A stretch of 64,000 nt of DNA from Hydrolagus colliei. Taxonomy: Eukaryota. Below the pieces are notes generated by a model. The model ran no database searches. It was given only the letters and a program-made list of their open reading frames with translations, and was not told the origin of the DNA. The stretch is taken from positions 9,486,001 through 9,550,000 of the forward strand of contig CM068757.1 of NCBI GenBank assembly GCA_035084275.1, written 5' to 3'. Positions 38,688-64,000 of the stretch are shown in pieces (the stretch's first letter is position 1; each line of letters begins with the position of its first letter). The translations under genes were made by a program, and so were the position numbers.

Positions 38688-39263
38688 CTTTCGGCCTCTC
38701 CTGAAACCCACCCATGATTTATTACATTGGAGTCAATTGAATGGGAATACAGGTTTTTTATGTCTCTGGGAAGCAAGAAGAACTTCTTGCAGATCTCCAT
38801 TGTTCTGAGTACCTACAAGAACAACAACAACAGCAGCAGCAAAATTACATTTGTATAGCCTGTTTCACGTTGGGAGGACGTCCCAAGGCGCTGGAGGAAT
38901 CAAATGAAAAAATTATAAAATAAGCAACACTGTGAAATCATCTGTGGATCTTTAAACCCAAACTTTTTTTTTTCCGTTTTAGAATCAGATTTGTCAATTT
39001 TCTTTTGCAATGGCTACACAGCAGCTACTTTATAAAGGAGGAAAGTGACTTCACAGTGACATGTAACAACACAGTAAAGCCGATGGAGGGTGACAATGAA
39101 TGGTACCCACGTTTTGTTGTTCAAACCCAGTGTTCTTGAGGTACACAAATCCAATGCCCGTGAAAGCCCTTATAATCTCAGAGCTCAACCGTTGCATTTC
39201 ATTGGCCGAGGGCTCGGCTTTGCCGAAGCCAAACGAGCCAAAGTCAATCACAGCAATGTTCAT
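38688..39263 (-). CDS. Second copy of dioxygenase coding exons 1 and 2 (alternative 5' cassette or truncated paralog)
   Basis: 39263-39111 (153 nt, MNIAVIDFGSFGFGKAEP...) and 38812-38688 (125 nt, VLRTMEICKKFFLLP...NHGWVSGEAE). Same exon lengths and phases as 34131-33979 and 33259-33135, with intact splice sites. No own exons 3-7 were found between 34400 and 38680. Confidence 0.8.
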
Positions 39264-39669
39264 CTCAGCCCAAGGATGATGGCGCCCTGCACAGATTTCT
39301 AGTAAATAAACACGAACAAAACAGTTATTATCACGGAAAAGGCACAGAAGAGACTGCCACATTGACTCACTGTGTAACCAGTAAAAAAAACAAATGGGTG
39401 GGGGGCGGGTGGAGGGTGGAATCGTTGTCCACGACTCAGGCAACAGGAAGAATCCATATACAGTAATAGGCAGAATAAAGGAGGCAGTCACTTCCGTGCA
39501 TGTGTGCTGTAGTGAGCTGCTAAGGCGATGCTGTGGGAATAGGTATAAGTCGGAAGGTGTTGGGGAAAGACCAGCATCCCAGACCAGGGCGGGGGAGGTG
39601 GGAGGGGGGTCTCAAAGGACATCAGTACCAGGATCCACTGGAGAGAGGGAGAGGGCGAGAGATAACGCA
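39264..39669. promoter_or_regulatory. Candidate bidirectional promoter (dioxygenase upstream cassette / B7-H6-like gene 1)
   Basis: Divergent ATGs about 406 nt apart; Ets-like CACTTCCG (~39490) and CGGAAG (~39551); GC-box-like ggggcgggg. Confidence 0.5.
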
Positions 39670-42600
39670 ATGTGGCTGTTTGTCCTGACAGCCTGTGTCC
39701 TCTCCTCAGGTGAGATACTATTCCGAGTTCAGCATTTCGATCGAGTTACACCCGCCGGCGCGAGACGCCTTCTCCACAATCCGGAAACTTCTGCGTTTTA
39801 TTTTTTAAAGAGAAGAGAGAGAAAAAAAACCTCAGAGAAAAAAAATGCAAATGTAATATCGTTTGAAACTGAATTTGTATTGATTCAAACGGGGGGCAAT
39901 AAACAGCGGGTGGTTCAATGTGTTTCTGGCTGCCAGAGACCTTTGTTCCCGATCCCTATCTCTCTCTCTCTATCTCTCCACCTGAACTTTGTTCTGTTTT
40001 TAACGATCGACTTTTGCAATGATTCTGTTTGATCGACTGTTGCAATGATTAATAGTTCTATTATATATACTGTTTGCAATGACTCTGGGTTCCACTGTGT
40101 TCAGTGTCCAGTCGCCCTTGGGATGACCTCCCAAAGTCAAACGCGCTGCACGAATATGATTTGGTTGTTATTGTTGTTCAAGTCACTAAACTTTACAGTA
40201 AAATGCAGTGATGTGTATCTGTGTTCCTTGGAGCTGAACCGGTTCTGAGGTGCCAAGCTTGACTAGCAAGTCGCAATCCTGTGTGTCAGTCTCAGCGGTT
40301 CAGTTCCTGAGCCAAACTTTGAGCGAAAGGCAGCGTCCAACAAACAGTACTGGATTGAAAAAAAAATGTTGACCAATTTTTTTTTCAGGGATTATTATTA
40401 GGCATGTGGAGTTAAGGTAAACTTGCCCAAGGTTTCGCCCTGCCTGGAAATGAACCCAGGTTTCTCGCTGGTAAAGGCGTGCGCTCTAACCACTGAGCTC
40501 CAGGACTCCACCAATAGCCTTGAGTGTGAAGTGTGTAAATAAGAGTGTAGATAAGCTTGGGTTTGGTTTTGTAATGACACACAAAAAAACAGCTTTATAT
40601 GAAGCTGGAAACTACTGAGAGTTCACTGTTCTCTGAATGCTGTTTGGTTGTGTATGAATGCGGGTGGCGTGCGGAGATCGAACAAATTCTTTGCCTTGTA
40701 GGTGATTTCTCTTGGCTGAATCATTAATGTGACTCAAACCACTACAAGTGCAAACACAACTTCTGCCAATAATAGCAAAAGTCCTTTGATTTGGTATAAC
40801 ACCTTCTTAAACCTAACTCTTCACTGACCGCATTTTCTGATGAACCGCGTAGCATAAAGTGCCCCAGGTCTGAGGTGTATTTTGCTAATGTAATAAGAGA
40901 ACTATTTTTGGACCCTGGGCAGACAAACAACAATGTTTTACTTGTGCTTCTGGTTTACACTTATGTGCATCAGAATAAATCACATTAATGAGGGTTTCTG
41001 TAATGGTTGAAATAATTAGTATTATTCACTCACAAAACACACATTCATATGATATATTAGTTTTTATTATTAATAATCATGGAATGAATGCAGGTGAGGA
41101 TGTGGAATTTGGGATGAGCTGCAGCTTGTTGACTTGCATGAATTATACATGTTGTGGCCAAGGTGAGTTGTATTTCATGTAATCTGGCACGAAGAGAAAG
41201 ATCTGATTAAATAGTTCTATTATATATATTGTAGAACCTCCTGAGCAACACCATAACTAGTTGTTACAGGATTACATGTTTGTTGTGGGTAGGAATCTAT
41301 TCCCTCCCCCTGTGTAGTATAGTTTCATGTTACCTGTAGAGTTGTATCGTCACTTCAGTTGATAGTACTCTGGCTTGGATCAAAGACCTTGAGTTCGCAG
41401 TCCAGCTGACACTCCAATGAAGTCCTGAGGAGTACAGAATTGTTGGAAGCACCATCCTTCAAATGCAATGTCAACCCAATGCACCTATGAAGGTGGATGC
41501 TAAACATCCAGGTGGACATTGAAGTACTACAGTAAAACTTGCGTAAAGTCTTATCTTTTTAAAATTATATAATTGCCCAAGTTGTAGTTCCACTGAGCCC
41601 CATTCGGTTTCCTATTAAAATCACTTAGATTTATTTACAATAATCATGTAGCTCAGTGGTTAGAGCACTTGCCTTACGAGCGTGAGACCTGTGTTCGAAT
41701 CCAGACTGGTCAGGCCAAACCTTGGGCAAGCTTCCTTACTCCACACGCCTAATAATAATCCCTCCAAAGAAAACACAATAATAAAATTGGTCACTTCAAT
41801 CCATGACTGTTTGTGGGACACTGCTGTGCGCAATTGGCTGCCGCGTTTCACCCACAAATATACAGTCGATTCGCTTTACAGAAAATTCTGTGAAGCGATT
41901 TGAGACGCTGATAAGATGTGAAAAGCGCTATGTCAAATGCAAGGATTATTATTATAATTATCATTATTATTAACTATCTCCTAACTGGTAATACTGCTCT
42001 CCTAACCATTACTCCCAGCACTTATTGACTGCACATTGAATCGTGGGAAACATAATCTCGACCTGTCACCACATGCACATTTACCAGTTGCATCAAATTA
42101 CGCATGTGCAGTATAGCTTATGTATTAAATGTGATTTTATATGCTTTACATAGTCTGCAACTCAGACTTCGCGTTAATCATATTCAATGTTAAAGTCCCG
42201 ACTGATATCATTTCTGTTATTTTTAATTAAAAAAAGACACTCTCCCAGAGTCCTGCAAGATTCATTCTTTTTTTGAACAGTAGCATAAGATTGTTCGCGT
42301 CTACTTGAACAGGAACAGAATTTGTGAAATCTATTATCTATTGATAATGCAATAATTATGCGAATATAACTGTTTTTTCCTCCCTTGTTTTGCTGAAGAT
42401 GCTTTCGAGTTGTCTATCTTTAAGAGCCCGTTGGAAGTCTTACAGCATGAAAATGCCCTCCTGGGGTGTAAGATAACCGGCTACAGAAACGAGTCTGAGA
42501 TCGATCCAAGCAATGTCACCGTTCGGTGGTTCTTTGGGCCTGAAGGGAACAGAAAAGAAGTGTTTTCCTTCCATGGGGACAGCTACATTACAGCACGTCC

Positions 42601-45600
42601 TGGAGCCATGATGTCTGAGGGTGCTTTACGGAGAGGAGACGCTTCAATGCATCTCCCGAACGTTAAATTGGATGAAGCAGGAGAGTACACGTGTGTTGTC
42701 CTTTTGGATTCCCGTAAAAAAGAAAGGAGTTCGCGGATGCACGTGTGGGGTAAGAATCAGGGATATTATTTCTCACTATATTGATGCATGCAATATATTT
42801 GAAGCTCTTTGAGATCCCTAGAAGACGTGAAAAACGCAAGAATTATTATTATGCAATTCCGACTAACACTGGATAGTTGGGAAGGATTGAGGGAAGCATT
42901 GATGTGCATGTATACAGTATGAGATCCTGTTGACATTTATACCCTGCGTTTGGTTGCAAAGAAATGGGAGAACCAATGAGAGCTAGCAGAGAAACAGAGA
43001 GCTTCAAAAGTTATCAGGAAGATGGCAGAATAAATGGTGCAGCAGTAAGTATGGATCTTGTGCACATCACTAAAACCTTAAAGTACAATATTGATCTCCC
43101 ACCTGAGGTCTTGTTGGAGGCATGGGTTCTTGGATGAGTATGTATGTGCAAGCCTAGGTATGTGAATGTGGGTGGGTGCCAAGGTGATCTACACAGGAGA
43201 TGAAGGGATGGCATGTTGAAGTTCCTATGTAATCCTGGCTCTATCCTGCGACTGTTTTTACGGGGCTTTTCTATTTATGTTGTGAACAGCTAGACCAAGC
43301 ATCCATTTGTCACCTCTTCACATCTCCGTGGTGTCAGGCAAGGAAGCCTCTGTGCAATGCAACGTGAGTGGATTCTACCTGAGTGGCATTGACATTAGCT
43401 GGGTGGAAGTCTCCCAGGGGAAGAGCAGATCTCTCGTGGAGGGTGTCTGCAGAACAGCTCTAGTTAACAGTAGCGATGGCACGTTTACAACCTACAGCCT
43501 GCTGAAGGTCACACCTACACAGGGGGACGATGGGAATAAATACAGATGTATAGTGAGGTATAAGGCACTTCACCATGATTTCACATTGGAAGCCAGCCTC
43601 CATGTCGAAGGTACGTTCAGTGCTATGAGTTCCACAGGAGCTGTTAATTCAACATAAGCTTGTTGAACCGTGGAGGCAGAGGTGCCTGTGTCAGTGCTGT
43701 GTCACTCAGATCTCCATGACATTAGCCAGACTCAGCTGGTAGCGAACAAGAGCACAAAATTGGTTCAGATGAAGAAGGCCCTTTGGCCCATCCATGCTCA
43801 TCTCTTCAGAATGCCCTCCCATCAAAACATTAAGCTTTTTCTTAAATGAATCCTGTGTTCTGGCCTTAACCACCCTTCCTGGCAACCTGTTCCAGTCATT
43901 AATTATTTCTGAGTGAAGAAACAAATTTTGGTGTTATTCCTGAAATTGCCTTTTGGAAATCTAACCCCATGTCCTGCTGTACTAGTGCCTTGGTACATCC
44001 AAACGTATTGTTCTGGGTTTACTTTTTCAATCCCATTTAAAATGTTGCATAAGATATGTTTCTTGTCTCTGGGTCAAAATTGCCTCCAAAAAAACAGTCA
44101 CTTCACTTGCCAAGGCCCCCTGTAAAGTGGTTTGTGAGGTTCCGATAAGTAAGGAGCCATATTAATGGTTTGGGTAATCTTGGTTTGGGAGGACAGAAAA
44201 AGCTTTTCCATTGGAAGGTAATGTGGTACAAAATATTACTCACCTACGTGTTCTAAAACGGTATTATGTATTGTTTTCTGTGTTTACAAGCTGCACTGAT
44301 ATTTACACTTTCTTGTTTGATTATAGAACCACATCTAACCCCACCGGTGACTGCAATCCTCGGAATTATATTCGGCGTGCTCCTGTTTTGTATGATTTGT
44401 TTGTCTTTTGGCTTTTGTATTCACCTGAAATCATCAGGCAATGGTAAGGAGAGATCATTTTTGCTCACAATTTTCATTTCCTTGCTAACTGCTTGTTACA
44501 GGGTTGATCAATCACATCCTCTCGACAAGGGATGCCAAACCAGACAGATAAGTGCTTCATTGTCAGAGATTCCTTTCTGTGGATGAGACATTAATCCAAG
44601 CTCCTGTTAACCAGTTCAGGTTGATTTAAAAAAAACATCCCAGAGAATGAAGTCTCTCTGTGTGTCCTAGCTGCCAATCCACCAGATATGAGCCCATTCT
44701 GTTCTGCCTGATTGTGAGGCTTTGCTCTGCCTGAATTGGCTACTCCATTTGCCAACAAGTATAGTCACAACACTTTACATGAAAGACTCTGGGAAACACT
44801 TTGAGACATTTTGTTGTTGGAGGCATTGTATAAAACGTAATGATTATGATTATTATCACAACTCAAGTACAACCTTTTAAATTTATGTCCCTTGTCCTGC
44901 TTTCCTGACTTAATCTGGTCCTATATATACTTACATTGAACTCTTGTAACCCTCACATCGCTAAGGGTTATGTTTTATTTGCACACAAACATAGAACAAA
45001 TGTTGAGACTTAGACATTCAGAGGCCTTCTATTCTTGTTTCCAGATGTTTGTCTAAAGGCTAAAATGATCATAGCCCATCCTTATGCACACCTGGAAGAG
45101 GGTAATCCAGATTACTCTAGTTCTAAATACAGACCAAATCAGTCATCTGTGGTGAGGGTGCTCAAGACGGGTTGCAGGCCATTAAGGCACATACTTCATT
45201 GCTGCAGTGAAGATTCTACGCCTCGGAGAAGTGTGCCAGCAGCATCTGATGAAGTTATGATTCCTCTCCGAAGCAAACTAGAGTATTCCTGTAGTGTGGA
45301 TGTGTCCCAATGTAAAGGTAATCCCATCTCCTCCATTGCCTTTGATTCTCTTGTTTTCCAGTGTTCTGCACTGTTGAATAGGCAAATATGCTGCTGTCTC
45401 ATTCGAGGCCTAAATTTCCACCAGGCCTTAGCCTGAAATATCATTAAAAATTCATACTTGTGTGGATGTATGCAAACATTTTAAATCTAGTCTCAATTTG
45501 GCAGTTGTCTTTCCTAAATTCTTTTTTTTTAAAAAAAGTACAGTATTCAAATAAAGAGTTCTGTGTATTTCTATATGATTTTAAATTTGAAGACAAAATA

Positions 45601-47789
45601 GTTCTTACATTATTCCAGTTGGCCTGCTTGGCTGGACTACATGACAGCAGTTCAGAGCAATTTAGCCTGATAAATCATCCTCACTCAGTTTTGTAATTTT
45701 GAAGAGGGGAAGATAGATTTGTAGGAAGATTGAATGTAAATGGATCAGATTGTTCTTTGTGATTTTTTTTTCTGGAGTATAGAGAGCTACCAGCTGCTTG
45801 TAACCTTGTGCGGAGTATATTGGTCATATTTTTAACACTCAATCAATTTTGTTTCCCGAAGTTGCACCCAAGATACCGGAGATTATTGTGCCTCCTCAAG
45901 TCTTTCATCAAGAGCAAACGACTTTGACCTGTCTGGTAAACGAGTTCAAGCCAAGACCATTAGGTATCACGTGGTACCAGGTTGGGCGAGATGGTGCAAG
46001 GCTCGAGATTGCGCAGGTTGATCACCAGAGCAGAGTTGTGGTTGCCGACAACCCAAAGGCACAGAGCGCCAAATACGCTCACAACATCAGCGAGTTTATG
46101 CATGCGGATAACTCGTATATTGTCACCAGTGTGCTCATGCTCACACCGGCTGTGCAAGAAGATGATGGAACAGCTTACATCTGCAAAGTGGAACATGTTG
46201 CTACCGGTTTGGTCATGGAGAGAGCGATTGTGCTGGGCGTTAAAGGTACGAGGGAACAGTGATGCACTGATGTGTGTTGTAAACTGCCACTGGGGAAGAT
46301 ATTAATGGTGATTTAAAAAATGATCCGTTATTTTCACAAGTAGCAAAAATTCTAGTCAGTGGCAGATCTGATGAACTTTGCTGGATATTTGCTTGGCTCA
46401 GTGGTAGCATTCTTGCCTCTGAGTAAGATGGTTATGGGTTCAAATCCCAAATGAGGATTTGGAATCATATAGTCTAAGATGACACTCCAATCGGTGGTGG
46501 GAATGTGTTTCATTGACGGAGATGCTGCCTTTCAGATGAGACATTAAACCGAGGAGCCGTCTGCCTGTTCAGGTGGTTGTTAAAGATCCTATGCGCTATT
46601 TGTAAACAGAAAGGAGTTTCTTCTGGTGTCCTAGTCAACAATCCCCCAAAGAAAATCGGTCACTCGTTTCAGCACTCATTCGTGAGTGCGTGGAGCTCCT
46701 GTGGCTTAGTGGTTAGAGCACTTGTCTTGCAAGCTGGGGAGACCAAGCTGAGGAGACCTGTGTTCGAATCCAGGCAGGTCAGGGCGAAACCTTGGGCAAG
46801 TTTCTTACTCCACACGAATAATAATAATCCCTCCCAAAAAAACACAATAATAAAATTGGTCATTTCAATCCACGACTGTGTGTGGGACACTGCTGTGCGC
46901 AAATTGGCTGCCGCGATTTGCCCACAAATATATACAGTCAATTCACTTTACAGTATATTCTGTGAAGCGCTTTGGGACGTTGATAAGATGTGGAAAGCGC
47001 TATATCAAATGCAAGGATTATCATATATGATTATATATTATATTATTCATAGCCATTTGTGGACCATTACTTTCCTCTTGATATGAACCATTGTATTTAA
47101 GTTCCTAAATTTTGGGTATCACAGCTCAGGGAGAATATGTCATATTTGGAGGATGACCAGCATTGATTGACTAAATTACTGCCAAGGATGAAAGGACCAA
47201 GTGGATGGGTGGTTGTGTGTGTGTATATGTGGATGGATGGGTGAGTGCATGTGTGGATATGTCAGATCAGTCAGTCAGCCAGTCCTGGCAGAATAGACCC
47301 ACCAAATGGGCTAAATAATAAATCGCATACTTGGCATAGGGCATTTTGTGTCAGGAGGGCGCCCCAAAGTGCTTCAAAGGATACACTGTAAAGTGTAGTA
47401 ACTGCATGTTTTGTGCATTGAATGGCCTCCTCCTGTTCCTGATTAACTACAGTGGTGTTTGAAATTGTTTTTCATTCTTAGCCACTCCGAAATTGGATGC
47501 GATCTGGAAAGCATCAGGGCTGGCGATCACCAAGGAGGAACTTGTACTGAACTGCAGAATCCACTCCTTTTCCCCAAACGCTATTGGCGTTGTGTGGTGC
47601 AAGGATGGGGAGGAATTGCCCGAGAGCGTGGAGCTCAGTGATCCCATTTGTGGGAAGGATGGCCTGTATTGCTGCTTGAGCACGTTGAGATTAATGCCCA
47701 TCAAAAATGCTTTTGCCAGCACGTACACGTGCAGAGTTTACCACGAAAGTCTGGCTCAGCCCAAAGAGATGGAGTGGATCCTAGATTGA
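39670..47789 (+). CDS. NCR3LG1: B7-H6 (NCR3LG1)-like gene 1: SP-IgV-IgC1-TM followed by post-TM IgC1-like domains
   Basis: Exons 39670-39709 (signal peptide MWLFVLTACVLSS), 42399-42749 (IgV with the B7-H6-like VFSFHGD..RPGA..GDASMHLP..EAGEYTC), 43290-43610 (C1), 44327-44443 (TM), probable 45045-45317, 45862-46245 (C1), 47482-47789 (C1, TGA). All introns phase 1. About 597 aa with the probable exon. The symbol denotes family likeness, not proven orthology. Confidence 0.8.
41643..41972 (+). mobile_element. tRNA-headed SINE, same family
   Basis: gtagctcagtggttagagcacttgcc head through aaggattattatt tail. Confidence 0.85.
43700..44050 (-). mobile_element. CR1 3' fragment
   Basis: WNRLPGRVVKA..DSFKKKL motif typical of the CR1 ORF2 C-terminus. 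Confidence 0.7.
45045..45317 (+). CDS. Probable post-TM exon of B7-H6-like gene 1 (degenerate Ig-like segment)
   Basis: Polypyrimidine tract + CCAG acceptor and AAAG|GTAATC donor; 273 nt, phase 1-1, open. Contains VCLKAKMIIAHP (resembles VAPKIPEIIVPP) and YSCSV. Confidence 0.5.
45862..46245 (+). CDS. Gene 1 post-TM Ig C1-like domain A (Cys/Trp/Cys retained)
   Basis: TLTCLVNEFKPRPLGITWYQ...YICKVEH; CCGAAG acceptor, AAAG|GTACGA donor, phase 1-1. Confidence 0.85.
46383..46670 (+). mobile_element. Deu-domain SINE (AmnSINE1/SacSINE1-like)
   Basis: ggctcagtggtagc head and Deu core gatgagacattaaaccgagg..ctgcctgttcaggtgg..aaagatcc. Confidence 0.7.
46691..47035 (+). mobile_element. tRNA-headed SINE nested in an older Deu-domain SINE
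   Basis: Same family head and tail; follows directly on the Deu-SINE body at 46383-46670. Confidence 0.8.
47482..47789 (+). CDS. Gene 1 terminal post-TM Ig C1 domain B with stop codon
   Basis: LVLNCRIHSFSPNAIGVVWCKDG...YTCRVYHESLAQP-WILD*; TTCTTAG acceptor. Confidence 0.85.
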
Positions 47790-51604: not shown

Positions 51605-51691
51605 ACAGCCCCAGTCAGTTCGGCTGGAAGCTGGAGAGAGAGACAGACACAGAGAGAGACAGACATGTTGAGGGGGACAAACTCGGCTATA

Positions 51692-54600
51692 ATGTCCTCA
51701 CCCGGTGGAGCTGCCAGGGCGCTGACCCTCGTCCTGATCCTCGGGGCTTGGATTGCAGGATCAGGTACAGAAAATGCGCAAACGTTAGACTGATTTGCTG
51801 CTGGATCCCACCGCTGAGCGAGACACAGAGACACACCGCTAACTGGAGGCTGCCCTGGGGGAGGGGGGGGGGGCACAGCCTGAAGGGTCTGTGTTTGGGG
51901 TTTAGCTGATAAACAGTGACCGCCGCCCAGCGCATCAATCAGTGAGTGGCCCCTTTTCGGGGGTCTCTCCATTCTCTCCCCACAGTGGGGTTTACTCCCC
52001 CCCCCCCCCCCCCCCCCCGTTATTTCAGGGGCCACCAGCACAAACAGGAAGCGTTTTGGAGCTGGGGCAAGGAACAGACATTTTGTGATCGCAGTTTCAA
52101 ATTTGCTCTATCAGCAGTTGGCTACCAGGTTAACATGGAGGGGAAATCGGGTGGGGTTTTTAACTCAAAGTTCAAGAGAGCTCTCTGCAGCCTGTGTAAA
52201 TTGGGTTGTTGTGATGGATACTGTATAACATGAAGTTTATGTGTTAAGCACCGGGGCAGGTGCATTGGAAAGATTGAAGAGCCCAACCCTGTGAAACGCC
52301 TCCCAGTTTGAGAGAAACTTACATAAGAATTAGGAGCAGGAGTGAGCCATTTGGCCCCTCAAGCCTGCCCTGCCATAACTCTAATTAACTGCCCGATCCC
52401 CATATCCCCTAATCCCTCTAGTTTAAAAAAATCTATCAGTCTCAGCCTTAAAAATGTTCGAGGACTGAGAATCTATACCCTCTGAGTGAAGAAATGTTTC
52501 TAAAAGGCTGATTCATAATTTTAACACTATGACCCCTCTGGTTATAGATTCTCCTACCAGGGGAAACAGTCCCTCATTGTCTACTTTATCCAGCCCTTTA
52601 AGAATCTTATAAGTTTCAATAAGATCTCCCCTAATTCTTCTGTACACTAATATGCCGTTCGCCTTCTTAGTTGCTTGATGTACCTGCAAACTAACTTTTT
52701 GTGACTGATGTACAAGGACACCCAAATCCCTCTGAACACTAACACTGTCTATTCTCTCCCCTTCTAGAAAATAATCTGTTTTTCTATTTTTGCTACCTAG
52801 GTGAATAACTTCACACTTCCCCACATTAAATTCCATCTGCCACCTATTTGCCCACTCCCCTAGTCTATCTATATCCTGTTGCAATCTTTTTGCATCATCC
52901 TTAGAGTTTACTCTCCCACCTAGTTTAGTGTCATCCGCAAATTTAGATACGTTACATTCAATGTCCTCGTCTAGATCATTGATGTAAATTGTAAATAGCT
53001 GAGGCCCAAGCACTGATCCTGGTGGCACTCCACTAGTCACATCCTGCCAATTCAAGAATGACCCATTTATCCCTTCTCTCTGTTTTCTACCCGTTAGCCA
53101 CTCTTTCAATCCATGATAATATGCTCCCATTAATCCCGTGGGCCTTAACCTTGCGCAATAGCCTTTTATGTGGCACTTTGTGAAATGCCTTCTTAAAATC
53201 TAAATATACTACATCTGCTGGTTCTCTCCTATCTAACCTGCTAGATATATCCTCAAAAAAACTCTTAACAGATTAGTTAAGCATGACTTCCCTTTTGTAA
53301 AGCCATATTGACTCAGCCTAATCTTGTTATGGTCTTCCAGGTATCCCATAACGACATCTTTAATTAAGGATTCAAGAATTTTCCCTGTCACTGATGTCAG
53401 AATAACTGGTCTATAATTCCCCATCTTTTCTCTCCCACCCTTCTTAGATAGTGGAGTTATGTTTGCAATCTTCCAATCACTGGGAACCATTCCAGAATCC
53501 AGAGAATTTGGGAAGATCAAAGACAAACCACCCACTATTTCAGTAGCCACCTCTTTTAAAAACCCTAGGATGCAGGCCATCGGGTCCGGGGGATTTATCA
53601 GTTCTTAGACCTGACAATTTACCTAAAACCAATTCTTTACTAATATTAATTTCCCTAAGTTGCTTGCTAACATTGTGTTCTTGGTTCCCCTCTATTCTTG
53701 GTAGGCTTTCGGTGTCTTCTAAGGTGAAGACAGTAGCAAAGTACTTGTTTAATGACTCTGCCATGTCTATGTCCCCTATTACAATTCCCCATGTCTCTAC
53801 CTGTACGGACCCACATTTACCTTTGATAGCTTCTTCCTCTTTATACATTTGTAAAACCTCTTGCAGTCTGTCTTTATATTCCTTGGTAGTTTGCCTTCAT
53901 ATTTCATTTTCTCCCCTTAATCACTTTTTTGGTTCTCCTTTGTTGATCCCTAAAGCTATCCCAATCCTCGGGTTTACTACTCATCTTAGCTGTTTTATAG
54001 GTTGCTTCTTTTAACTTGATAATTTCCCTAACTGCTCTAGTTAGCCATGGCTGGACCACCCGTGGCATTCTTATTCCTCAAAGGAATATGTGCTCACTGG
54101 GAATTTTGCATTATCTCTTTAAGCGTCTGCCATTGTTGATCTACTGTCAAATCCTTAAGTCTAATGTCCCAGTCTATTTTAGCTAAATCATCTCTCAAAT
54201 TTTTCACTCTCTCAGCTGCCACCCAGAGGCCAATTGTTAGTGTGTCCTGGGGCAGTCATGTAAACTTGTACAAGGTGAGGAAAGTCACATGGCAGCCAAG
54301 AAAATAGTGAAAATAACCAATTAAGCATTTATCAACAACAAATTACAATTGTATAAAACCTTTAATGTGGGGAGGATATCACAAAGCACTGGGCAAACAG
54401 GATTTCGACCAAAGTAGGGGTTGGGATCAGTACAACAACAACAATAAAAGTACATTTATAGAGCACCTTTCACGTAGGGTGGACTTCCCAAGGCGCTGAA
54501 CCATCAGATCGGGACCCGAGTAAGGGGGGAAGGGTCAGGGTAGGGGTAAGGGGACAAAGAGTAGCAAAGAGAAGAGAATTAGGAGGGCAGCAGAAGGCAC

Positions 54601-57600
54601 GGTTGAAGTGGAAGGTCTTGAGACCGGCGTTGAAGGAGGAAAGGGAGGAAGCGAGGCGAAGGGATTGCGGGATGGAGTTCCAGAGTGTAGGGGCAGAGAG
54701 GCTGAAAGCCCGGCCACTGATGGTAAGGCGGTTCGAGCGGGGGACATGGAGTAGGGTTGCAAAGCTGTGAATGGCCTTGAAAGTGAGGACGGGGATCTTG
54801 AATTAGATCCCCTGGGGGATGGGGAGCCAGTGGAGGCGGGCGAGGGTGGGAGTGATGTGGTCTTGGAGCTTAGTACGGGAGAGTACATGAGCTGCAGAGC
54901 TCTGAATAGTCTGGATCTTGTGAAGGGAGGAGCTGGGAAGGCTGATGAGGAGAGAGTTCCCGTTGTCAAGCCTTGATGTGATCAACGTGTAAACAAGCGT
55001 TTCAGCAGCTTGGGGGGTGAGGCAGTGGTGGAATCTGGCAATGTTGTGGAGGTGGTGGAAGGCAGTTCCGGTCATGGTGCAGATTTGGGGGAGGAAGGAC
55101 AGTCCAGGATCGAACAAGACGACCAGATTTCTGACTGACTTTGAGAGATGGAGAGTACAGCCTTGGTTGGATGCTTTTGTTGCCAGCGCCTGAGGTGTGG
55201 AGGTGCTGACGCGAGCCAATGAGGAGGGCCTCCGGCTTGTTGACATTTAGTTGGAGGAAGTTGTCCCTCGTCCAGGAATCAATGTCAGACAGACACGCAG
55301 TCAGAAAGCCAGTAGTCCTGGAGTTGAGGGAGGAAGCGGAAAGGTAGAGTTGGGTGTCATCCGCATACATGTGGAAATTTACCTCATGTGTTCGGATGAT
55401 GTCACTGAGGGGGAGAATGTAGAGGGTGAAGAGGAGGGGGGGGGGCAAGGACAGAGCACTGAGGGACGCCACAAGACGTGCGAGGGCTTGTAGAGTGAGT
55501 GAGTTGAGAGGAAAGAGCGGAGCTGGGAGGCAACTACTCTTTCAAGGACAGGGGGAATGGAGGTCAGGGAGGACAGGGGTAAAATGGTGACCACAGGCGT
55601 GGTTGAACAAGGAGGGTCTTGAGTCTTCCCAAAGACAGCCCTGGTCAAAATCTCAAACCACATTCTTAACATCTGATGAGCAAAGTCACATGCGCAGCCA
55701 AGGAAATTGGGGAAAATATCTTATTGAGAGTTTCTCCACAATCACGGCAACTTACCGTGTATGTAACGTGCTTCAGGAGGGTGGCATCTTGGAGCACTTG
55801 ACAGCGGCAAGATTTCACGCCAACCTGGAGAGAGAGGGGGGGTGACCGAAAGTGCGGTCAAAGAGAAAAGTCTTCAATTGCAATTTGAAGACGGACAAAA
55901 AAGAGTTGAAATGAAGGGATTGAGGCAGCAAACTCCAGAGGTTCGGAGTATAATGGCTGAAAACACGGCCACTATATGTTCAGTTGAGGGGATGAGGCCG
56001 TGCAAAGTGATTCAGCTGAGCTATGGCAGTCGGTAGTGGAGTGGGTGGGTGTAAGCAGATCGCAGAGGTCGGGAGGGATCAGGGTCGGAATTGATTTGCA
56101 TGTGAGAGGGAGGATCTTGAAATCGATCTGTTCTGCAATAGGCAGCCAGTGGAGTCTTGCAGGGACTCGGGTAATGGGGGTGCAGAGTCTCAAATGGGTG
56201 AGGACATGGGCGGCAGAGTATTGCCTCAACCCGTTATTCTCTGGATAACCTTCAGGGTACAATTCCATAGGCACTAGCTGTGCACCAGTGCTCTGCCCAA
56301 GGGGTCCATCAATTGCAAATGCACACGAGCATGCTGTTTAACATTCACCCCTTGGTGTTGTCAACAAACGCATGGGTAGGACTAGATTCTCTTTCTACAA
56401 TATTCTTGAAGCAGTAGCTCATCCCAACCTATGAATTTTAACCTGCTTCTAATCTCAGATAATCAAACCTGCTATTCTGGTATTTAAAATGCTCAATAAT
56501 CATCAATGTTTTGGAATGCCTCTTGTTTTTACACAGATGCTTTGGAGATGACAATATTTAAAGAGCCATTGGAGGTCTTATTGAATGAAGATGTTGTCCT
56601 CGAATGTAACGTAACTGGCTTCACTGAGCAGGTTCTCAACCTTGATATCGTTGCTGTTGAGTGGAAATTGGGCTCCAGTCAAGTCTATTCATTTAATGGA
56701 GGGGACATTAGTGCAAACAGAACGGGAGCAAAAATAATGAGAGAAAACTTGAAGAGTGGAGATGCCTCACTACATCTCCCGAAGGTGCAGATTTCCGATG
56801 AGGGCTATTACACGTGCATTGTTTTTGTGACCCCAGAAAAAGTGGAAAAGCGTTCGTCCATTATGGTGCTCGGTAAGTGCAGTGAAGCATCTCGCGGGGT
56901 GTATTGTGCGGCTTGTAATGTAATGTAATTCATAAGATCGGTTGAGATGAATCTGGTTCTTCAGGCCATCTGAGTTTATCCATCCAGACTACCCATCCTT
57001 CCATAAATTCATCAGGCTATTTTAGTGTCCTGGCTGCAAGCACCCTGCCTTGCAAACTGTTCGAGTCATTAATCTTGTGGAGTCCTGTAGCTCAGTGGTT
57101 GGGCCACTTGCCTTGCAAGCAGGAGACCTGGGTTTGATTCCAGGCAGGGTGAACCTTGCGCCAGTTTCTTTACTCCACACGCCTGATAATAATCCCTCAA
57201 AAAAAATTGGTCAATTCAATCTACATCTGTTTGTGAGACACTCCTGTTTGCAATTGGCTTATCACCCACAAAATATACAGACAATTCACTAACAGTATAT
57301 TCTGTGAAGTGCTTTGAGATGCCTGGAAGACGTGAAAAACCACGATATCAAATGCAAGGATTAATCAGACCTTAGATAAAGAAATACTACCTGGTGTCTG
57401 TCCTGAAATTGTCCTTTTCAATTTGTTGTCAGACTCCACAACTGTGAGGCGCTCTGGGTTGCACTCCTCTGTGAAGTGCACTATACTATAAAAAGGCAAG
57501 CTGTTGTTGTTAAACCTATTTCCTCTTGTTCTACCAGCTGGATACATAACATTTAGTTCTGGCTTTATTTTTTCAATCCCATTTGAAATGTTTTCTATAT

Positions 57601-60600
57601 ATTCCGCTCAGCGCAAGTTATTTTGACATCTCTCAAGACGGAAAAGACTTTAGATTGTCTCATCGTTGCTCCTAGCCATGGACAATAGAATATTGCAGAA
57701 TGATGCAATACCCCGCTGTTGTGACTGTGGGTGTCTCTCTCTCTCATCTGAGTGTGTGTCCCTCAGAATTATGATGCAAGGGAATTTGGCAAATTTGTGA
57801 AAAATTGAAAGGATTTTTGCTATTGAGAGGTACATAACAAAAATGTACTGCCAAGCCATTTTGTTCACTTCATTGATTGAAAACTACAGATAAAGAAACA
57901 ACAACAAAAACAATTTGCATTTATACAGTGCCCTTCACACTTGTTAGCATCCCTGAGTAATCCCAACGCAGGCTTGAATGGGGAAATGGGCTTTGCTCAT
58001 TCCCGAGGCCCCGCTGTTGTGACTGTGGGTGTCTCTCTCTCTCATCTGAGTGTGTGTCCCTCTGTGAGTATGCGTCTCAGCGTCTGTGTGTGTCAGTGTG
58101 TGGTGGCGAGCCCCGAGAGGCAGGAGGTGGTGATCTCCTGGAGCCCCCACCCCCAAATCGAGTGGGTCACCCAGGCTTGTTAAAGGAAGCATTTTTTTTG
58201 GCAGCAATTTAACATGTGTTATTTCTTAATGTTTCATTTTCATCAATGAAATGTAATAATGTAGGTTGGCAGTAAAATATGCCTCAATAGCACCAATCAA
58301 TCCCCCGCAGCCCTGCAAATTTCCTCGCAATTTTGGGCAAATATTTGCACAATTTTCTATTGGCCTTGATTATGATAGGGTAAATAGTAACATGTTATTT
58401 CCACTGGTTGGTGAACCAGTAACAAGATAACACAGGTTTAAGCTAACCACAAGAAGAATGCTGGAGATGTATACAATTAGGAGAGGTTTTTGACAGTTCA
58501 AATGGGAAGAAACATTTCCATGAGTTGGGGTGTCAAGTGACTAGGTAGTATAAGTGTCATAAGATGAGTGATAAGAGAGGTTAGGCAAACATTTTTCACT
58601 CCGAGGTGTTGGGATGTGGAATAGACTGCCACGGAAGGTGGTAAGAGTCATAACAAGAGTAAAAAGCAGAGTCCATTGTGTAACCAGATGTTAATATGGG
58701 AGGCTTGAAGGGGTTGGCAGAAAAAGAAAACGCAGTGGAATTCAATGAAAAACATGAGTTGAAAGCTAGAGAGAGACTTGATGGGCCAAATGGCCACCTT
58801 CCGTAATGCAAATTGACACGATTCTGTGAATTGAAAGGGAGGGTAGAAAAAACGTTTCACCAACCAGCTGCTGTAATGTGGAACTCTCTGCCGTTATCCA
58901 TTCTTGAGGCAGAGTCCGTAAATTCTTTCTGATGCGGGATTAGATGCAACAGCTTGTAATTATACAGCACCCCTTGAGCATGGTAGCCCCCCAGAGCGCT
59001 CAAAAAGAGGAAGATTGTGGGAGTGCAAAGGAAAGTGGCATTAGTTGTGTTCATGGTAAGTAAAGCAGCAGTGCATTTGATGGATGATCGACCTGTTTCT
59101 TGCCTGTAACATTCTATCAGACATTTACACAACTTGATAAGGTGCTCTATCAAATGCAAAGATTATTATTTCACAATATTGTCTTCCAGTTTGCACTCAT
59201 GAGCCAAATCATTTTTTGTTTGCCCTTCAATTCCCACTCTCCCACCATCATAATTATCATGTCCAAACAAAATGTTCCTACAGTGTGTTAACCACAAAGC
59301 TCAGTTAAAACACATTGATTAGCGTAATTGTAGTTAACCTCTCTGCTTAAGCAAGCACTGTTACCACTTAAAATTTCATAGATGAACTAGCAATAATTTC
59401 TGGGTCTGCAGTACCCCTGCAGGGATTTCTAAAGATGAGGTGCAATTCCTGGTTTCCCGTTGCTGAGGCTGGAGTTAGTATGTATGTTGTGGGGAGAAGA
59501 TAAAAACGCTGCTCCAATGAGAATATTAATACAGAGCACTTTTGCAATCTCTACAGCTAAGCCAAAGGTTATCTTGTCTCCACATCACATCAAAATCAAC
59601 AATGGTTCAGAGGGCACTTTGATGTGTGATGTTAATGAATTTTACCCTAAGATGCACAACATCAGCTGGGTCAAGGTATCGCGTGGTGCGGAGATGCAAA
59701 TTACAACAGGTATCGTGACACGAGATGTAGTTACCAACAAGGACAGCACGTTTAGTGTTTCCAGCGAGTTGACAATCAGACCAACCGTGGACGACAATGG
59801 TAATCAGTACAAGTGTGTGGTGCAGCACAGAGACATCGTCATCAAGGAGGCAGAGCTGACTGTGGGAGTTGAAAAACCCCAGGAACCTGAAGAACATGGG
59901 CCTGGAGCTGTTATTGGAGGTGTAATCGGTGTCCTGTTGGTGATTGCGATCTTTGCTTTAGCGGCACTTTACGTTTGGAAGAAACTGAATCAAGGTAAGG
60001 ATCTTCACAGCCCTAAACAACAACGGCAGACATGGCAGTGAATTATTGCACATTAAATGCTCTTGTGCACATTTTCTATTGACAGAGAACTGTCAGCTGA
60101 CACAATGATCAACTGGAATAGATAGTGTCCTAATGACAATAATAAAAAGTTAAAATGTTTGTGTCTAGCCCTCCGCCCTCTGGAGCACTTATTCAAATGC
60201 CTTCTAAAGACTTACCGGCTTGATCGTGCTTTTGGTCACTAGCAGCATTCCCTGCTTCCTCTTGCCACCTCACTCAGTGATCCACACTGTAAAGTACTTG
60301 TAAGGTACTTTGAGATGACATCAAAAGATACTGCATGAGGGCAAATTGTTGTTATAACTGTGGTGATCATTACCCAGGTTTCTTGAGAGAATTAGAATAT
60401 TTGATGCTACTTTTTGTATGTTCCACAGCTCCTCCCAAGATCAATGAAATCAGCAAACCCACTCGCTTTATACATGGGCAGCGTGTCGATCGTAGTTGGG
60501 AAGTGACTGGATTCAAACCAAAAGAGATAGAGATCATGATATTACTGACGAGGAAAGGAAAACAGCCACTGGAGCTATTTGTCTGGAAATTCACAAAGAA

Positions 60601-63600
60601 TAAAAACGAACCAGGTCAGGTTGAAGAAGGTTTTCATCTCCTGAAAACAAAAAATGGATCTGACGGGGATAATTCGTTCTCTGCTGACACCCCACAATGT
60701 GATCAGCTCGAAAATGGGACCTTCAGGGTAAAGTGTCACATATGGTTCTGTCCTGATGTATCTGAGGACGATGGAGCTCAAATAACAATGCAAGTTCATC
60801 ACAAGGCTCTGAAACAGCCTCTCAAAAAATCTGTAACTTTATATGTTGAAGGTAAGATTTGCATTGTGCACCTCCCTACCTCCACCTAACCACACCCACA
60901 TGTCAATGTGCAAACAATGGCAAGAAATAAAAACATGGAAATCCGGGGTATTGATCCTTTCTAATAATAAAAAAAAAAAATTTGGTCACTCAATCCAGAA
61001 TTAGAGTGTGAAATTGGCTGACGGGTTACGCCCATAAAATATGCAGTCAATACACTTTACAGTGTATTCTGTTGAGTGCTTTGAGACGTCTCAACAGTGG
61101 GATAAGGCGCGATATCAAACACTAATTATTATTATAATTAGAGGAAACAAGGTTATTCACCCCACCGAGCCTATGCCGGTGGTCACTCATCCACTGGAGC
61201 TATCTCCCCGTATCCCAATTCTCTACTCTTCCCCCTTACCCAATGATGAGCTGCTTCAAAACCACTGCAACATTGTTACTATGTGAGCTCCAAGAGTTAC
61301 CTTATGCCCAGTAACCCTGTGTGGTCAGTTGACGGATTGACTCAGTTGGTGACGCTCTCTCCTATGGGACAAGGTCGTCAGTATTTCAATTGGCATCTGA
61401 AAACCTGCCCTTCACCTCAGGCTATATAGAAGCTACCATAATCTCTGTCACTCTTACTGTGTGTCACTCTCTCTTTCTTTCCCTCTCAGCTTCAGAGAGA
61501 GAAGAGAATAGATTGAGAGGGTAAACAAAAGGGGAGAGAGAAGAGAGAGAGACAGGGAGGGAGAAAGAAGAACACATAAAAACACAGACAGTTTGTGTTC
61601 ATACAACTTTTATATTAACATGGAAGTTCTCAGACAATAATAGCCTTGCACATGACATATCACCTGATCATGCCTTTGAGACTTCACAGAATAAACTGTA
61701 AACAGAGGAATGTGGAGTAAGGAAACTTGCACAATATTTCGCCTGCTGGAAATCGTACCCAGGTCTCTCGCTTATGAGCTACAGGACTCCACGGAATATA
61801 CTGTAAAGCAGATTGATTGTGTAATTTGTGTGCGACGAGCAGCAGCCAATTGTGCACAGCAGTGTCACACAAATAGTCATGGATTAAGTGACCAATTTAT
61901 TATTTTAAAATATTTTTGAAGCAATTATTATCCCTGAAATACAATCTGAGAATCTACTAATAACCAGGTTCCTACATACAGATGGGTAAACAGAGGCGTG
62001 TGGATTAAGATTATTTAAGGCCCACCATTTCCAGGAATCAAACGAAACCTGAGGTTGAAGTGCGAACGGAATCCAGGGGGTCAATGTGAGACCCCAGTGT
62101 GAGCCCCTAGATTGATTTTATGATTTGTAACTGGACACAGTGTGGCCCTTTGTAGAATTACAGCATAATGTTAATAATGTTTGTGGAGTCCTGTAGCTCA
62201 GTGGTTAGAGCACTCGCCTTACAAGCGAGGGACTTGTGTTCAATTCAAGCATGGTGAAACCTTGGGCAAGTTGCCTTGCTCCACATGCCTGATAATAATC
62301 CCTCAAAAAGAAAATTGGTCATTTTAATCCACAATTATTTGTGGGGCACTGCTGTGCGCAATTGGCTGCCACAATTCACCCACAGTTAATTCACTTTACA
62401 GTATATTATGTGCAGTGCTTTGAGATGTCTTGAAGACGTGAGAAGCGCTATATAAAACACAAGGATTATTATTAATAACATGCTACTTGTGTTTTACAGT
62501 TCCTCCCACGATGACTGAAATCAACATACCCTCTGGTATTGTGCACGGTGTCAATGTGCCTCTGACATGGGAGGTTAATGGCTTCAACCCACGGGCCATT
62601 GTAATTGCTGTATTGGTGAAGAGGAAAGTGGATCAGGAAGCAAAGCAACTGTTTCATTGGCAGATCCCAGAGAAAGAAAAGCAGCCAATCCCACATGATA
62701 TTACCCCCAGCATTGCTACACAAGTTAACTCCTTCACTGCTGAGGTGGCAACGATTGAAAAGACAGATAAAGGGACTTTCAGTGTGAAGTGCAGCGTTGC
62801 CATGTGTGCTGATGTAATCAGGGATAATGATGCTGAATTCACTGTTGAAGTTAAACATCAGGCTCTGGATAATCCTCTCACTAAAGCTATAACATTATGT
62901 GTCGCAGGTAAATTCTACCTCTGTATTTTCTCTCTCTCTCTGGTGCTAATATGTGAGTTGAAGTGCAGCATGCTGCTGTGTGTGTCCCTCTATGCTGCAA
63001 TAGTTATTTTTGTTTGTGACAGTGACGTTCTATCACATAGACATCTGTGCCGACAGCCACCCCCCCTTCCCCTCTCTATCCAGGCTCAGTGGATGACTCT
63101 ATCACTTTAAATCGCTCAAACACATTAGCTGAAGTGAACAATGCCATATTAATGCATGTTATTGCTGTTGTGTTTGGGGGCAGCTCTGTTGCAGGTTGAT
63201 GGGGAGGTGATGGGCTCTGTGGTAACGGTCCAGCTCAACATCAGCCTGAAATCTCATCTGTTTTCTTGAGAAACTTAAACAAATCGATTTTGAGATCCTC
63301 AGACTTGCCTACAATTCACCTCTTGCTCTCACACCTCGCTACCTCTCCAATCTGCAAACACCCACTTCTCAACCCACTCCGTTCGCTTGCTCAAACCTTT
63401 GGCATCTTCCTTGAACTGTCCACGAAACTATCGGCAGCCAGGCATTCAACAACGATACCCTGAACCTCTGAAACTCCCTCCCCCAAACTCCAGCTCGCCC
63501 TCCATCTCCATCAATCATTGGATCACACCTGAAGGTTCTACTCTCTGACCATGCCTACCATCACCTCCCCTCTCTCCCCAGCTCAGTATTAAACTACAAT

Positions 63601-64000
63601 ATTGCGAAGCTAATCAAGACGTTACCCTGCATGAAAGTTGCTATGTTAAATGGAAGTTGCTATTGTTGAAAGAGTGTGTAACTCTGTCTGAAACCTTGCT
63701 GCAGATTTACATTGTAAACTGTGTGTGAGGCTGTGTGGTGTGTCCTGTAACTGGATTTAATCTTTACATGATATTTGTGTTTGTGTTATAGCTCCTCCCA
63801 TAATTACTGAATGGCCGGCAACCCCTGATATGACACATGGTGACACCTCCACTCTGAGTTGGGCAGTGACACGGTTCAATCCACGTCCCATTGTAATTGT
63901 TGTATTACTGAAGAGAAAAGGGGAGTCGAGATCAAATAAGCTGTTTTATTGGCAGACAGAGAAAGAACAACCAGCAGGAAATAACATTCCTGTTATCCGT
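51692..64000 (+). CDS. NCR3LG1: B7-H6 (NCR3LG1)-like gene 2: SP-IgV-IgC1-TM-(atypical IgC1-like)x>=3; runs off the window end
   Basis: Exons 51692-51764 (signal peptide; an upstream in-frame ATG at 51665), 56537-56872 (IgV, GDASLHLP..DEGYYTC), 59557-59994 (C1 + TM + KK), 60429-60851, 62500-62907, 63792->64000. All phase 1, AG/GT-bounded, open. The symbol denotes family likeness. Confidence 0.82.
52320..54190 (-). mobile_element. 5'-truncated CR1 LINE (RT) in intron 1 of gene 2
   Basis: GNYRPVILTS, GFTKGKSCLTNL, SGVPPGSVLGPQLF and KFADDTKLGG across ORFs 53540-53848, 53233-53580 and 52513-53130. Confidence 0.9.
54440..55610 (-). mobile_element. Degraded L2 LINE 3' part
   Basis: [22 protein letters not shown] and L2 tail; similar to the 29570-31410 copy. 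Confidence 0.85.
55770..56240 (-). mobile_element. Older L2 3' fragment
   Basis: [17 protein letters not shown]-type sequence on the minus strand. Confidence 0.7.
57079..57365 (+). mobile_element. tRNA-headed SINE, same family
   Basis: ggagtcctgtagctcagtgg head and aaggatta tail. Confidence 0.8.
58380..58960 (+). mobile_element. Degraded CR1 3' fragments
   Basis: CR1 C-terminal-like sequence (tgtggaactctctgcc, atgggccaaatggcc); boundaries approximate. Confidence 0.55.
60429..60851 (+). CDS. Gene 2 post-TM atypical Ig C1-like domain 1 (no canonical Cys)
   Basis: APPKI...RSWEVTGFKPKEIEIMILL...ITMQVHHKALKQPLKKSVTLYVE; 423 nt. Confidence 0.85.
62186..62480 (+). mobile_element. tRNA-headed SINE ending about 20 nt upstream of the 62500 exon
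   Basis: ggagtcctgtagctcagtggttagagc head and aaggattattatt tail. Confidence 0.85.
62500..62907 (+). CDS. Gene 2 post-TM atypical Ig C1-like domain 2
   Basis: VPPTM...LTWEVNGFNPRAIVIAVLV...FTVEVKHQALDNPLTKAITLCVA; 408 nt. Confidence 0.85.
63792..64000 (+). CDS. Gene 2 post-TM atypical Ig C1-like domain 3 (partial, too short for the ORF track)
   Basis: TTATAG acceptor, then APPIITEWPATPDMTHGDTSTLSWAVTRFNPRPIVIVVLLKRKGESRSNKLFYWQTEKEQP..., open to the window end. Confidence 0.85.

Follow-up and report, generated by a model that had tools for sequence, protein, structure and literature searches.

An NCR3LG1 (B7-H6)-family gene of Hydrolagus colliei with a predicted cytosolic array of disulfide-less, C1-derived immunoglobulin domains

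We analyzed a 64,000-nucleotide stretch of the genome of Hydrolagus colliei (GenBank assembly GCA_035084275.1, contig CM068757.1, positions 9,486,001 to 9,550,000 of the forward strand), referred to as the window. It consists of vertebrate-type DNA with long introns, tRNA-derived short interspersed nuclear elements (SINEs) and open reading frames (ORFs) of long interspersed nuclear element (LINE) reverse transcriptases. A nucleobindin-like gene is followed by two tandem genes of the NCR3LG1 (B7-H6) type, gene 1 and gene 2. Gene 2 encodes a leader, an immunoglobulin (Ig) V domain, an IgC1 domain and a transmembrane segment (TM), and behind the TM at least three further Ig domains, which we call D1, D2 and D3. 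All coordinates are listed in Table 1.

The exons of gene 2 have AG/GT boundaries throughout, and each D-exon acceptor lies behind a pyrimidine tract. All internal exons are divisible by three in length and are of phase 1 at both ends; joined together, the exons give an open frame of 638 codons. The leader aligns with the N-terminus of Callorhinchus milii XP_007886037, and the IgV exon is 68% identical to its C. milii counterpart. The TM (GAVIGGVIGVLLVIAIFALAALYVW) is a hydrophobic segment of 25 residues coded by positions 59904–59978 and is flanked by the acidic sequence EEHGP on one side and by KKLNQ on the other. With a leader, one TM after C1 and basic residues on the inner side, the predicted product has the layout of a single-pass type I membrane protein. 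The TM shares its exon with C1, and this exon translates without a stop codon up to its donor. Any gene 2 transcript with the C1 exon therefore also contains the TM. D1 follows the TM at a spacing of 12 residues, and the D exons carry the motifs RSWEV, LTWEV and LSWAV, GFKP, GFNP and RFNP, as well as VHHKAL and VKHQAL. A first-pass annotation of this DNA had described a signal peptide, IgV, IgC1 and a TM followed by KK, a stop-free phase-1 donor behind it and three more phase-1 exons with C1-set hallmarks. The leader exon, the Pfam matches, the translation and the exon phases agree with this description, as do the AG acceptors, stop-free frames and motifs of the D exons.

Table 1. Features of the window. 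Letter triplets give the residues in the columns of the B-strand cysteine, the C-strand tryptophan and the F-strand cysteine.
Feature	Position	Strand	Details
Gene 2, leader exon	51665–51764	+	ATG to GT donor, phase 1; encodes MLRGTNSAIMSSPGGAARALTLVLILGAWIAGS
Gene 2, IgV exon	56537–56872	+	336 nt, AG/GT; Pfam V-set 4.3e-8
Gene 2, exon of IgC1, stalk, TM and KKLNQ	59557–59994	+	Pfam C1-set (PF07654) 3.2e-14; GT donor 59995, phase 1
Gene 2, D1 exon (first post-TM Ig domain)	60429–60851	+	423 nt; starts PPKINE; W-I-M
Gene 2, D2 exon (second post-TM Ig domain)	62500–62907	+	408 nt; starts PPTMTE; W-V-V
Gene 2, D3 exon, incomplete at the window end	63792–64000	+	starts PPIITE; W-V-?
Gene 2, possible short-tail end	60039–60147	+	TGA 60039–60041, ATTAAA 60052, AATAAA 60141; sequence motifs only
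Gene 1, tandem paralogue of canonical type	39670–47789	+	seven exons
Gene 1, leader	39670–39709	+	
Gene 1, IgV	42399–42749	+	
Gene 1, C1	43290–43610	+	
Gene 1, separate TM exon	44327–44443	+	117 nt
Gene 1, degenerate D1 remnant	45045–45317	+	273 nt (91 codons); HLEE and YRPNQ recognizable
Gene 1, canonical C1 (domain 2)	45862–46245	+	C-W-C
Gene 1, canonical C1 (domain 3)	47482–47789	+	C-W-C; ends in TGA
Nucleobindin-like gene, upstream of gene 2	5604–14144	+	ORFs; Pfam NUCB1_N 2.3e-15; PDB nucleobindin 1 EF-hand 5.6e-5
LINE reverse-transcriptase ORFs	21016–21762, 28085–31369	+	longest 599 codons, 29570–31369
Low-complexity block	9300–10370		G+C-rich, strand-skewed
Dioxygenase-like exon copies	33832–34362, 39051–39491	-	Pfam DIOX_N 3.7e-4, below gathering score
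tRNA-like SINE heads with common tail, examples	41640–41760, 46700–46830, 57080–57200, 62183–62300		GTAGCTCAGTGGTT...GGTTCGAATCC-like

In a search of the PDB, the best matches of the V-C1 ectodomain of gene 2 were structures of human NCR3LG1 (6yjp, 3pv6 and 4zso, E-values of 2e-27 to 9e-27), which outranked CD276 and TAPBPR. The nucleobindin-like gene upstream contains EF-hand and leucine-zipper exons. NUCB2 adjoins NCR3LG1 in the human genome, and this neighborhood would support orthology of the locus with human NCR3LG1. We thus regard gene 2, on the basis of homology, as an NCR3LG1 (B7-H6)-family gene from a cartilaginous fish, which is in line with its first designation as B7-H6-like.

The D domains were compared with C1 domains in an iterated profile alignment that contained 1,135 domain instances, canonical C1 domains included. 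Where the pre-TM C1 domain of gene 2 reads C-W-C, all three D domains have a tryptophan in place of the B-strand cysteine and an aliphatic residue in place of the C-strand tryptophan, and the two complete ones have methionine or valine in place of the F-strand cysteine. The same substitutions had been read from the exon translations beforehand. The change from cysteine to tryptophan in strand B takes a single base. D1, D2 and D3 are 37–46% identical to one another (tblastn E-values of 1e-7 to 1e-28), a likeness far beyond chance that identifies them as paralogues. They are about 140 residues long and thus exceed C1 by about 40 residues. The surplus follows strand C and precedes strand E. An extra C' strand holds a new, conserved tryptophan (LFxW). 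The other cysteines in each complete D domain of gene 2 form a CxxxxC motif in strand E. A strand-E cysteine is present in 42 of 62 first post-TM domains that lack the F-strand cysteine, as compared to none of 93 pre-TM C1 domains. Since it is retained even where strand B carries tryptophan, it has no obvious partner. The second cysteine of the motif, five residues on, is putatively located on the opposite face, as judged by β-strand geometry.

Pfam searches with D1, D2 and D3 yielded no C1-set match at E ≤ 1 and no other family at E ≤ 0.01, and a phmmer search against the PDB returned weak Ig CL matches alone (E = 0.02). An AlphaFold2 model of D2, calculated with an alignment of 38 sequences, had a mean predicted local distance difference test (pLDDT) score of 89.2 and a predicted template modeling (pTM) score of 0.84. 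It is an all-β Ig sandwich in which the insert between strands C and E forms extra strands. In a Foldseek comparison of this model with the PDB, the listed matches were all Ig domains with TM-scores of 0.5–0.6; V-type domains ranked at the top, and the C domain of IgNAR and a major histocompatibility complex class II chain followed lower down. The structural check suggested in the first-pass annotation therefore returned the expected Ig β-sandwich for D2.

The descent of the D domains can be traced through intermediates. D1 matches the canonical C1 exon of domain 2 in gene 1 with an E-value of 1e-5, and the strand hallmarks of both line up in a joint alignment. D-type domains of other species can still hold the B-strand cysteine. 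Because of these intermediates, together with the iterated profile alignment and the weak CL matches, we consider the D domains to be Ig domains derived from the C1-set. They now fall outside the C1-set definition: the B-strand cysteine, the C-strand tryptophan and the Pfam match are gone, as is the F-strand cysteine of D1 and D2. Compared with C. milii, D1 is 65–68%, D2 76–77% and D3 65–69% identical (D3 with respect to XP_042197504). The D exons of the window, at 65–77%, are as well conserved as V and C1 (61–68%).

The exon that carries the TM and its donor is free of stop codons in gene 2 and in every relative that we read. The C. milii proteins XP_007886037, XP_042197506 and XP_042197504 as well as the Ensembl model A0A4W3GGV3 read ...FWKKW[TN]QAPPKITEI..., i.e. 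the TM is joined to D1; the Ensembl model runs on into the intron after D1. UniProt entry V9K7L7, also from C. milii but of the canonical type described below, contains the full order of V, C1, TM and tail. Compared with its genome-derived Ensembl counterpart, this entry has 15 differences in 1079 residues and is therefore an independent sequence; its accession series presumably stems from the elephant-shark cDNA project. In another species, an RNA-type Logan contig of 3.5 kb (L001, SRR10305542) shows a continuous ORF of 778 codons for the post-TM array, which must accordingly be transcribed and spliced in that species. Positions 1–131 of this contig, upstream of the D1 boundary, contain an in-frame stop and a purine-rich stretch that does not resemble an acceptor tract; the first methionine lies inside D1. 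Two readings of this upstream stretch offer themselves, intron retention or an alternative first exon that is non-coding; in the latter case a soluble protein with neither signal peptide nor TM would result. For gene 2 we infer that position 59994 is mainly spliced to 60429. The 434 nt from 59995 to 60428 were inspected by eye, and no start that resembles a leader and has a phase-1 donor was seen there. Exon 59557–59994 was also read for a cryptic donor in phase ahead of the TM, and weak GT sites inside the TM itself were all that was seen.

A profile of the D domain was searched against 1.84 billion representative proteins and matched 169 of them at E ≤ 1e-3, of which 88 reached E ≤ 1e-10. 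Most of the 169 representatives comprise 600–1200 residues, with one TM at about residue 240–290 and a D-type domain about 10–20 residues after it; in most of them no second TM was detected. A D-type domain with a lost F-strand cysteine at this distance from the TM is found in gene 2 plus 127 related proteins. Named members come from Callorhinchus, several sharks, rays, bichir, reedfish, sturgeon, coelacanth and lungfish, and further ones from caecilians, salamanders, frogs (with a large Xenopus cluster), turtles, gharial and pythons. Cartilaginous fish, amphibians and reptiles, the three groups in which the first-pass annotation had suggested a search, thus all contain such proteins. Database entries call the family members "uncharacterized protein" or, for proteins of reptiles, axolotl and some of the frogs, "natural cytotoxicity triggering receptor 3 ligand 1". 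A basic juxtamembrane motif followed directly by VPPK is conserved among the relatives, and the gharial junction (...IYKKYFKK-IPPNV...) is the same as in fishes.

Two types can be distinguished within this family. Proteins of the canonical type, which ranges from chimaera to reptiles, carry a single D-type domain and behind it five to seven C1 domains. In the columns of the B-strand cysteine, C-strand tryptophan and F-strand cysteine, post-TM domain 1 of this type reads C-[F/L/V]-[V/L/F/I], domains 2 and 3 both read C-W-C, domain 4 C-W-[V/M], domain 5 C-W-[F/C], domain 6 [I/V]-W-C and domain 7 mostly C-W-C. The D-only type was seen in cartilaginous fishes alone; it has 3–8 D repeats that always read W-x-[V/I], and some of the shark proteins contain acidic linkers between the repeats. 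Gene 2 belongs to the D-only type, with at least three D domains in the window and 3 to 8 in its Callorhinchus relatives. XP_007886037, XP_042197506 and XP_042197504 are 65–77% identical to gene 2. XP_042197504 has 1309 residues, eight D domains and the C-terminus ...HVTGGESASRQTQHSGRFK, and no second TM was detected in it. This protein and XP_042197527, the closest relatives of gene 2, end shortly after the last Ig domain without a detected second TM. A return of the chain through the membrane, which the first-pass annotation had named as an arrangement that would place these domains outside the cell, was hence not found in the gene 2 orthologues. A second subfamily (P0016, P0073, P0080, P0072, P0054 and P0084; 1300–2158 residues) has V, C1 and TM followed by 10–14 C1-type domains in which Cys-Trp-Cys and Leu-Trp-Val alternate; LOC101734362 of X. 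tropicalis (1814 residues) may fall into this subfamily.

As far as can be told from these comparisons, gene 2 is not unique. It is one example of an architecture that is old and widespread in the NCR3LG1 family and that has apparently not been described before. In the literature searched, we found no description of post-TM Ig domains in B7-H6 or of cytoplasmic Ig-like domains in related receptors; the work of Flajnik et al. 2012 lay outside the searched texts and may mention long models. One apparent match for cytoplasmic Ig-like domains was discarded, as its wording was "non-cytoplasmic".

Gene 1 represents the canonical type in the window. Its TGA is placed where relatives continue (WVLD-R/Q-L...), and a donor persists directly after the stop. 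No further domain exons were seen between this stop and gene 2. Gene 1 is a truncated variant or, alternatively, a nascent pseudogene. Two exon copies on the minus strand, located after the nucleobindin gene and before gene 1, resemble the N-terminal part of 2-oxoglutarate/Fe(II) dioxygenases. All six frames of the low-complexity block encode Pro/Ser-rich or Gly/Arg/Glu-rich repeats. The tRNA-like SINE heads and their common tail occupy introns and intergenic DNA, including the intron between D1 and D2.

The cleavable leader, the single TM and the basic juxtamembrane stretch of gene 2 would place the tail in the cytosol, and we infer that the cytosolic side is the most likely reading for the D array. 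D-only models with both an ectodomain and D domains all have the TM. Statistics of N-X-S/T sequons and cysteines provide an indirect measure. Pre-TM C1 domains contain 1.59 sequons per 100 residues, a density 1.74 times that expected from shuffling, with at least one sequon in 85% of the domains. For post-TM domains the density is 0.64–0.65 per 100 residues, or 1.15–1.18 times the shuffled expectation. Of 127 pre-TM C1 domains, 126 have the canonical cysteine pair; among the post-TM domains only about half have it, and no D-only repeat does. Both statistics fit non-secretory surroundings of the post-TM domains. The original proposal of cytoplasmic, disulfide-less Ig domains consequently holds for the loss of the canonical cysteines and for the Ig fold; for the location it is a best reading drawn from these statistics. 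In the same proposal, the strand-B tryptophan would fill the core vacated by the disulfide. The extension to folds adapted to the cytosol suits the D-only branch with tryptophan in strand B, of which gene 2 is a member. It applies less cleanly to the wider family, in which many post-TM domains keep both cysteines and a TM-skipping isoform is annotated.

Taken together, we consider it reasonably probable that gene 2 encodes a type I membrane protein of the NCR3LG1 family with a tandem cytosolic tail of C1-derived Ig domains. Several observations weigh against this assignment. Isoform X6 of the stingray Hemitrygon akajei (XP_072905590, P0175) lacks exactly the 38-residue TM segment of XP_072905587 (P0173) and is otherwise identical to it up to a 15-residue difference near the C-terminus, which implies that genes of the canonical type encode the TM on a cassette exon. 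Three other models connect C1 directly to D. The canonical post-TM domains 2 and 3 retain Cys-Trp-Cys in all lineages from chimaera to amphibians, suggesting access to an oxidizing compartment. In gene 2 itself, splicing of V to D1 with omission of the C1-TM exon would keep the frame. Furthermore, gene 2 is known only up to D3, inside which the window ends, and a protein search with the junction of C1 end, TM and D1 gave one Ensembl gene model alone and no RNA-derived ORF.

In view of the Hemitrygon isoform and the three models with direct connection of C1 to D, canonical genes may additionally make a secreted form that consists of Ig domains throughout. Extended to gene 2, this leads to an explanation in which D exons are used mainly in secreted or luminal proteins without a TM (V joined to D1), the form with TM and tail is minor or non-functional, and the D domains are unusual extracellular Ig domains. 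The uniform 1-1 phase of the exons, by which skipping preserves the frame, is compatible with such a use, and so are the disulfide pair that canonical domains 2 and 3 have held over about 450 million years and some cysteines and NGT sequons that are left in the D domains. In gene 2, however, the TM can be removed only together with C1, and D-only models without a TM were not found. The near-chance sequon density behind the TM, the absence of both canonical cysteines from D-only repeats with their conserved unpaired cysteine, and the conservation of the basic juxtamembrane motif and VPPK also speak against it, so that we regard this explanation as unlikely for gene 2. A simple reconciliation is that gene 1 combines a skippable TM exon with cysteine-bearing domains and gene 2 a TM fused to C1 with cysteine-less domains. 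With both types side by side, the window predicts that exon structure is tied to disulfide loss, although this is a comparison of two genes only.

The remaining observations on the unfavorable side concern the short-tail end listed in Table 1. Read-through of the donor at 59995 leads to a stop after 15 codons with the tail KKLNQGKDLHSPKQQRQTWQ*, followed by ATTAAA and AATAAA. A conventional short-tail isoform of gene 2 is thus possible and could dominate. In its strict form, this explanation treats the gene 2 product as a V-C1-TM protein with a tail of 20 residues, generated by read-through and polyadenylation, and the D exons as decaying or seldom-used relics, chained by gene predictors through matching phases. 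Chimeric models are indeed common for clusters of Ig exons, and the adjoining gene 1 does show decay in its degenerate D1 remnant and in its stop where relatives continue. On the other hand, the D exons are intact ORFs of 136–141 codons with consensus splice sites, and their identity to C. milii equals that of V and C1. None of the relatives that we read has a stop before the donor of the TM exon, and the architecture recurs across a large family that includes the independent C. milii sequence V9K7L7. We therefore rate the strict form as slightly less probable still than predominant secretion. Finally, D exons that form an independent gene further downstream, with a promoter and start of its own, and hence a soluble all-Ig protein without signal peptide or TM, are very improbable: the start of L001 could be read in this way but may be a plain retained intron, the interval upstream of D1 offered no signal-peptide-like start with a phase-1 donor to the eye, and the domains would still be cytosolic, so that an extracellular reading would gain nothing.

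Based on the type I membrane protein with a cytosolic tail, we propose the following picture. The V-C1 ectodomain would be the part that an NKp30-like receptor sees, as judged by homology. The D domains would descend from the first post-TM C1-type domain of NCR3LG1-like proteins, which is present in most jawed vertebrates. Splicing of the D exons onto the C1-TM exon would place them on the cytosolic side, and such a location would fit the lost canonical cysteine pair, the unpaired strand-E cysteine and the occurrence of sequons near chance level. For the function of the array we can offer conjectures. It could act as a rod-like binding platform that tethers or clusters the ligand, or it could report the intracellular state to the cell surface, by analogy with the B30.2 domain of butyrophilins. 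Such a role as scaffold or sensor is conjectural. We also suggest, more tentatively, that B7-H6/NCR3LG1 began as a ligand with a cytoplasmic array of C1-derived Ig domains and remains so outside mammals, and that the cartilaginous-fish branch including gene 2 became obligately cytosolic, disulfide-free and tandemly expanded; we hold this broader scenario with less confidence than the assignment of gene 2 itself.

B7-H6 is a clinically studied stress ligand of the natural killer (NK) cell receptor NKp30, and its tail, Gag-like in humans, is poorly understood. If a long cytosolic Ig array was the ancestral tail, from chimaeras to reptiles, the mammalian tail would have replaced it. C1-set domains, which textbooks treat as a marker of the secretory pathway, would then be usable in the cytosol, and we know of no earlier case in which antibody-type C1 domains function inside the cell. 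A so far unexplored coupling of intracellular events to the display of NK ligands would be possible. It would suggest an inside-out link from the state of the cytosol, such as infection or stress, to ligand display, comparable to B30.2 sensing in butyrophilins. The occurrence of the architecture throughout the family widens this significance, yet it also means that gene 2 is not a one-off.

Gene 2 shares with human B7-H6/NCR3LG1 the ectodomain of IgV and IgC1 (2e-27) and the single-pass type I layout. A nucleobindin-like gene is its neighbor in the window, and the human gene adjoins NUCB2; long reptile and axolotl relatives of gene 2 are named NCR3LG1 by NCBI. The difference lies in the tail. 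Human NCR3LG1, a protein of about 454 residues, ends in a Gag-like tail with short signaling motifs, whereas the tail exons of gene 2 encode a tandem Ig array. NCR3LG1-like models such as LOC103174895/V9K7L7 of C. milii, LOC102345720 of Latimeria and NCR3LG1 X1 of Gavialis resemble gene 2 in the order of V, C1 and TM, in the basic motif and in the D-type domain without F-strand cysteine. They differ by five to seven further C1 domains, several of them with Cys-Trp-Cys, and by a TM on a separate, skippable exon. Gene 2 and its relatives from chimaera and sharks contain D-type repeats only, with a tryptophan in strand B, and the TM of gene 2 is part of its C1 exon.

Butyrophilins such as BTN3A1, with the order V-C-TM-B30.2, are similar to gene 2 in their B7-related ectodomain, their single TM and a folded β-sandwich module in the cytosol. 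Their B30.2 domain is a functional analogy for inside-out reporting. However, the butyrophilin tail is a PRY/SPRY (B30.2) domain, and the tail exons of gene 2 have no SPRY or PRY match in Pfam and encode C1-derived tandem repeats. The Ig domains of titin and filamin and the FnIII arrays of integrin β4 are, like the D domains, disulfide-free β-sandwich modules in the cytosol, and integrin β4 is a precedent for such modules in the tail of a receptor. These modules are of the I-set, filamin or FnIII type without detectable kinship to the C1-set, in contrast to the C1-derived D domains. UrIg and UrIg2 of elasmobranchs combine a non-rearranging V domain with many C1-type domains that arose by exon duplication (PMC12227049), and UrIg2 (PDB entry 9dmx) is among the C1 matches of gene 2 with an E-value of 1e-13. 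All Ig domains of UrIg2 precede a C-terminal TM and are extracellular and disulfide-bonded (PMC12227049). An identity of gene 2 with UrIg or UrIg2 is ruled out by the position of its TM between the second and third Ig domains. UrIg2 is nevertheless the nearest published non-rearranging gene with multiple C1 domains.

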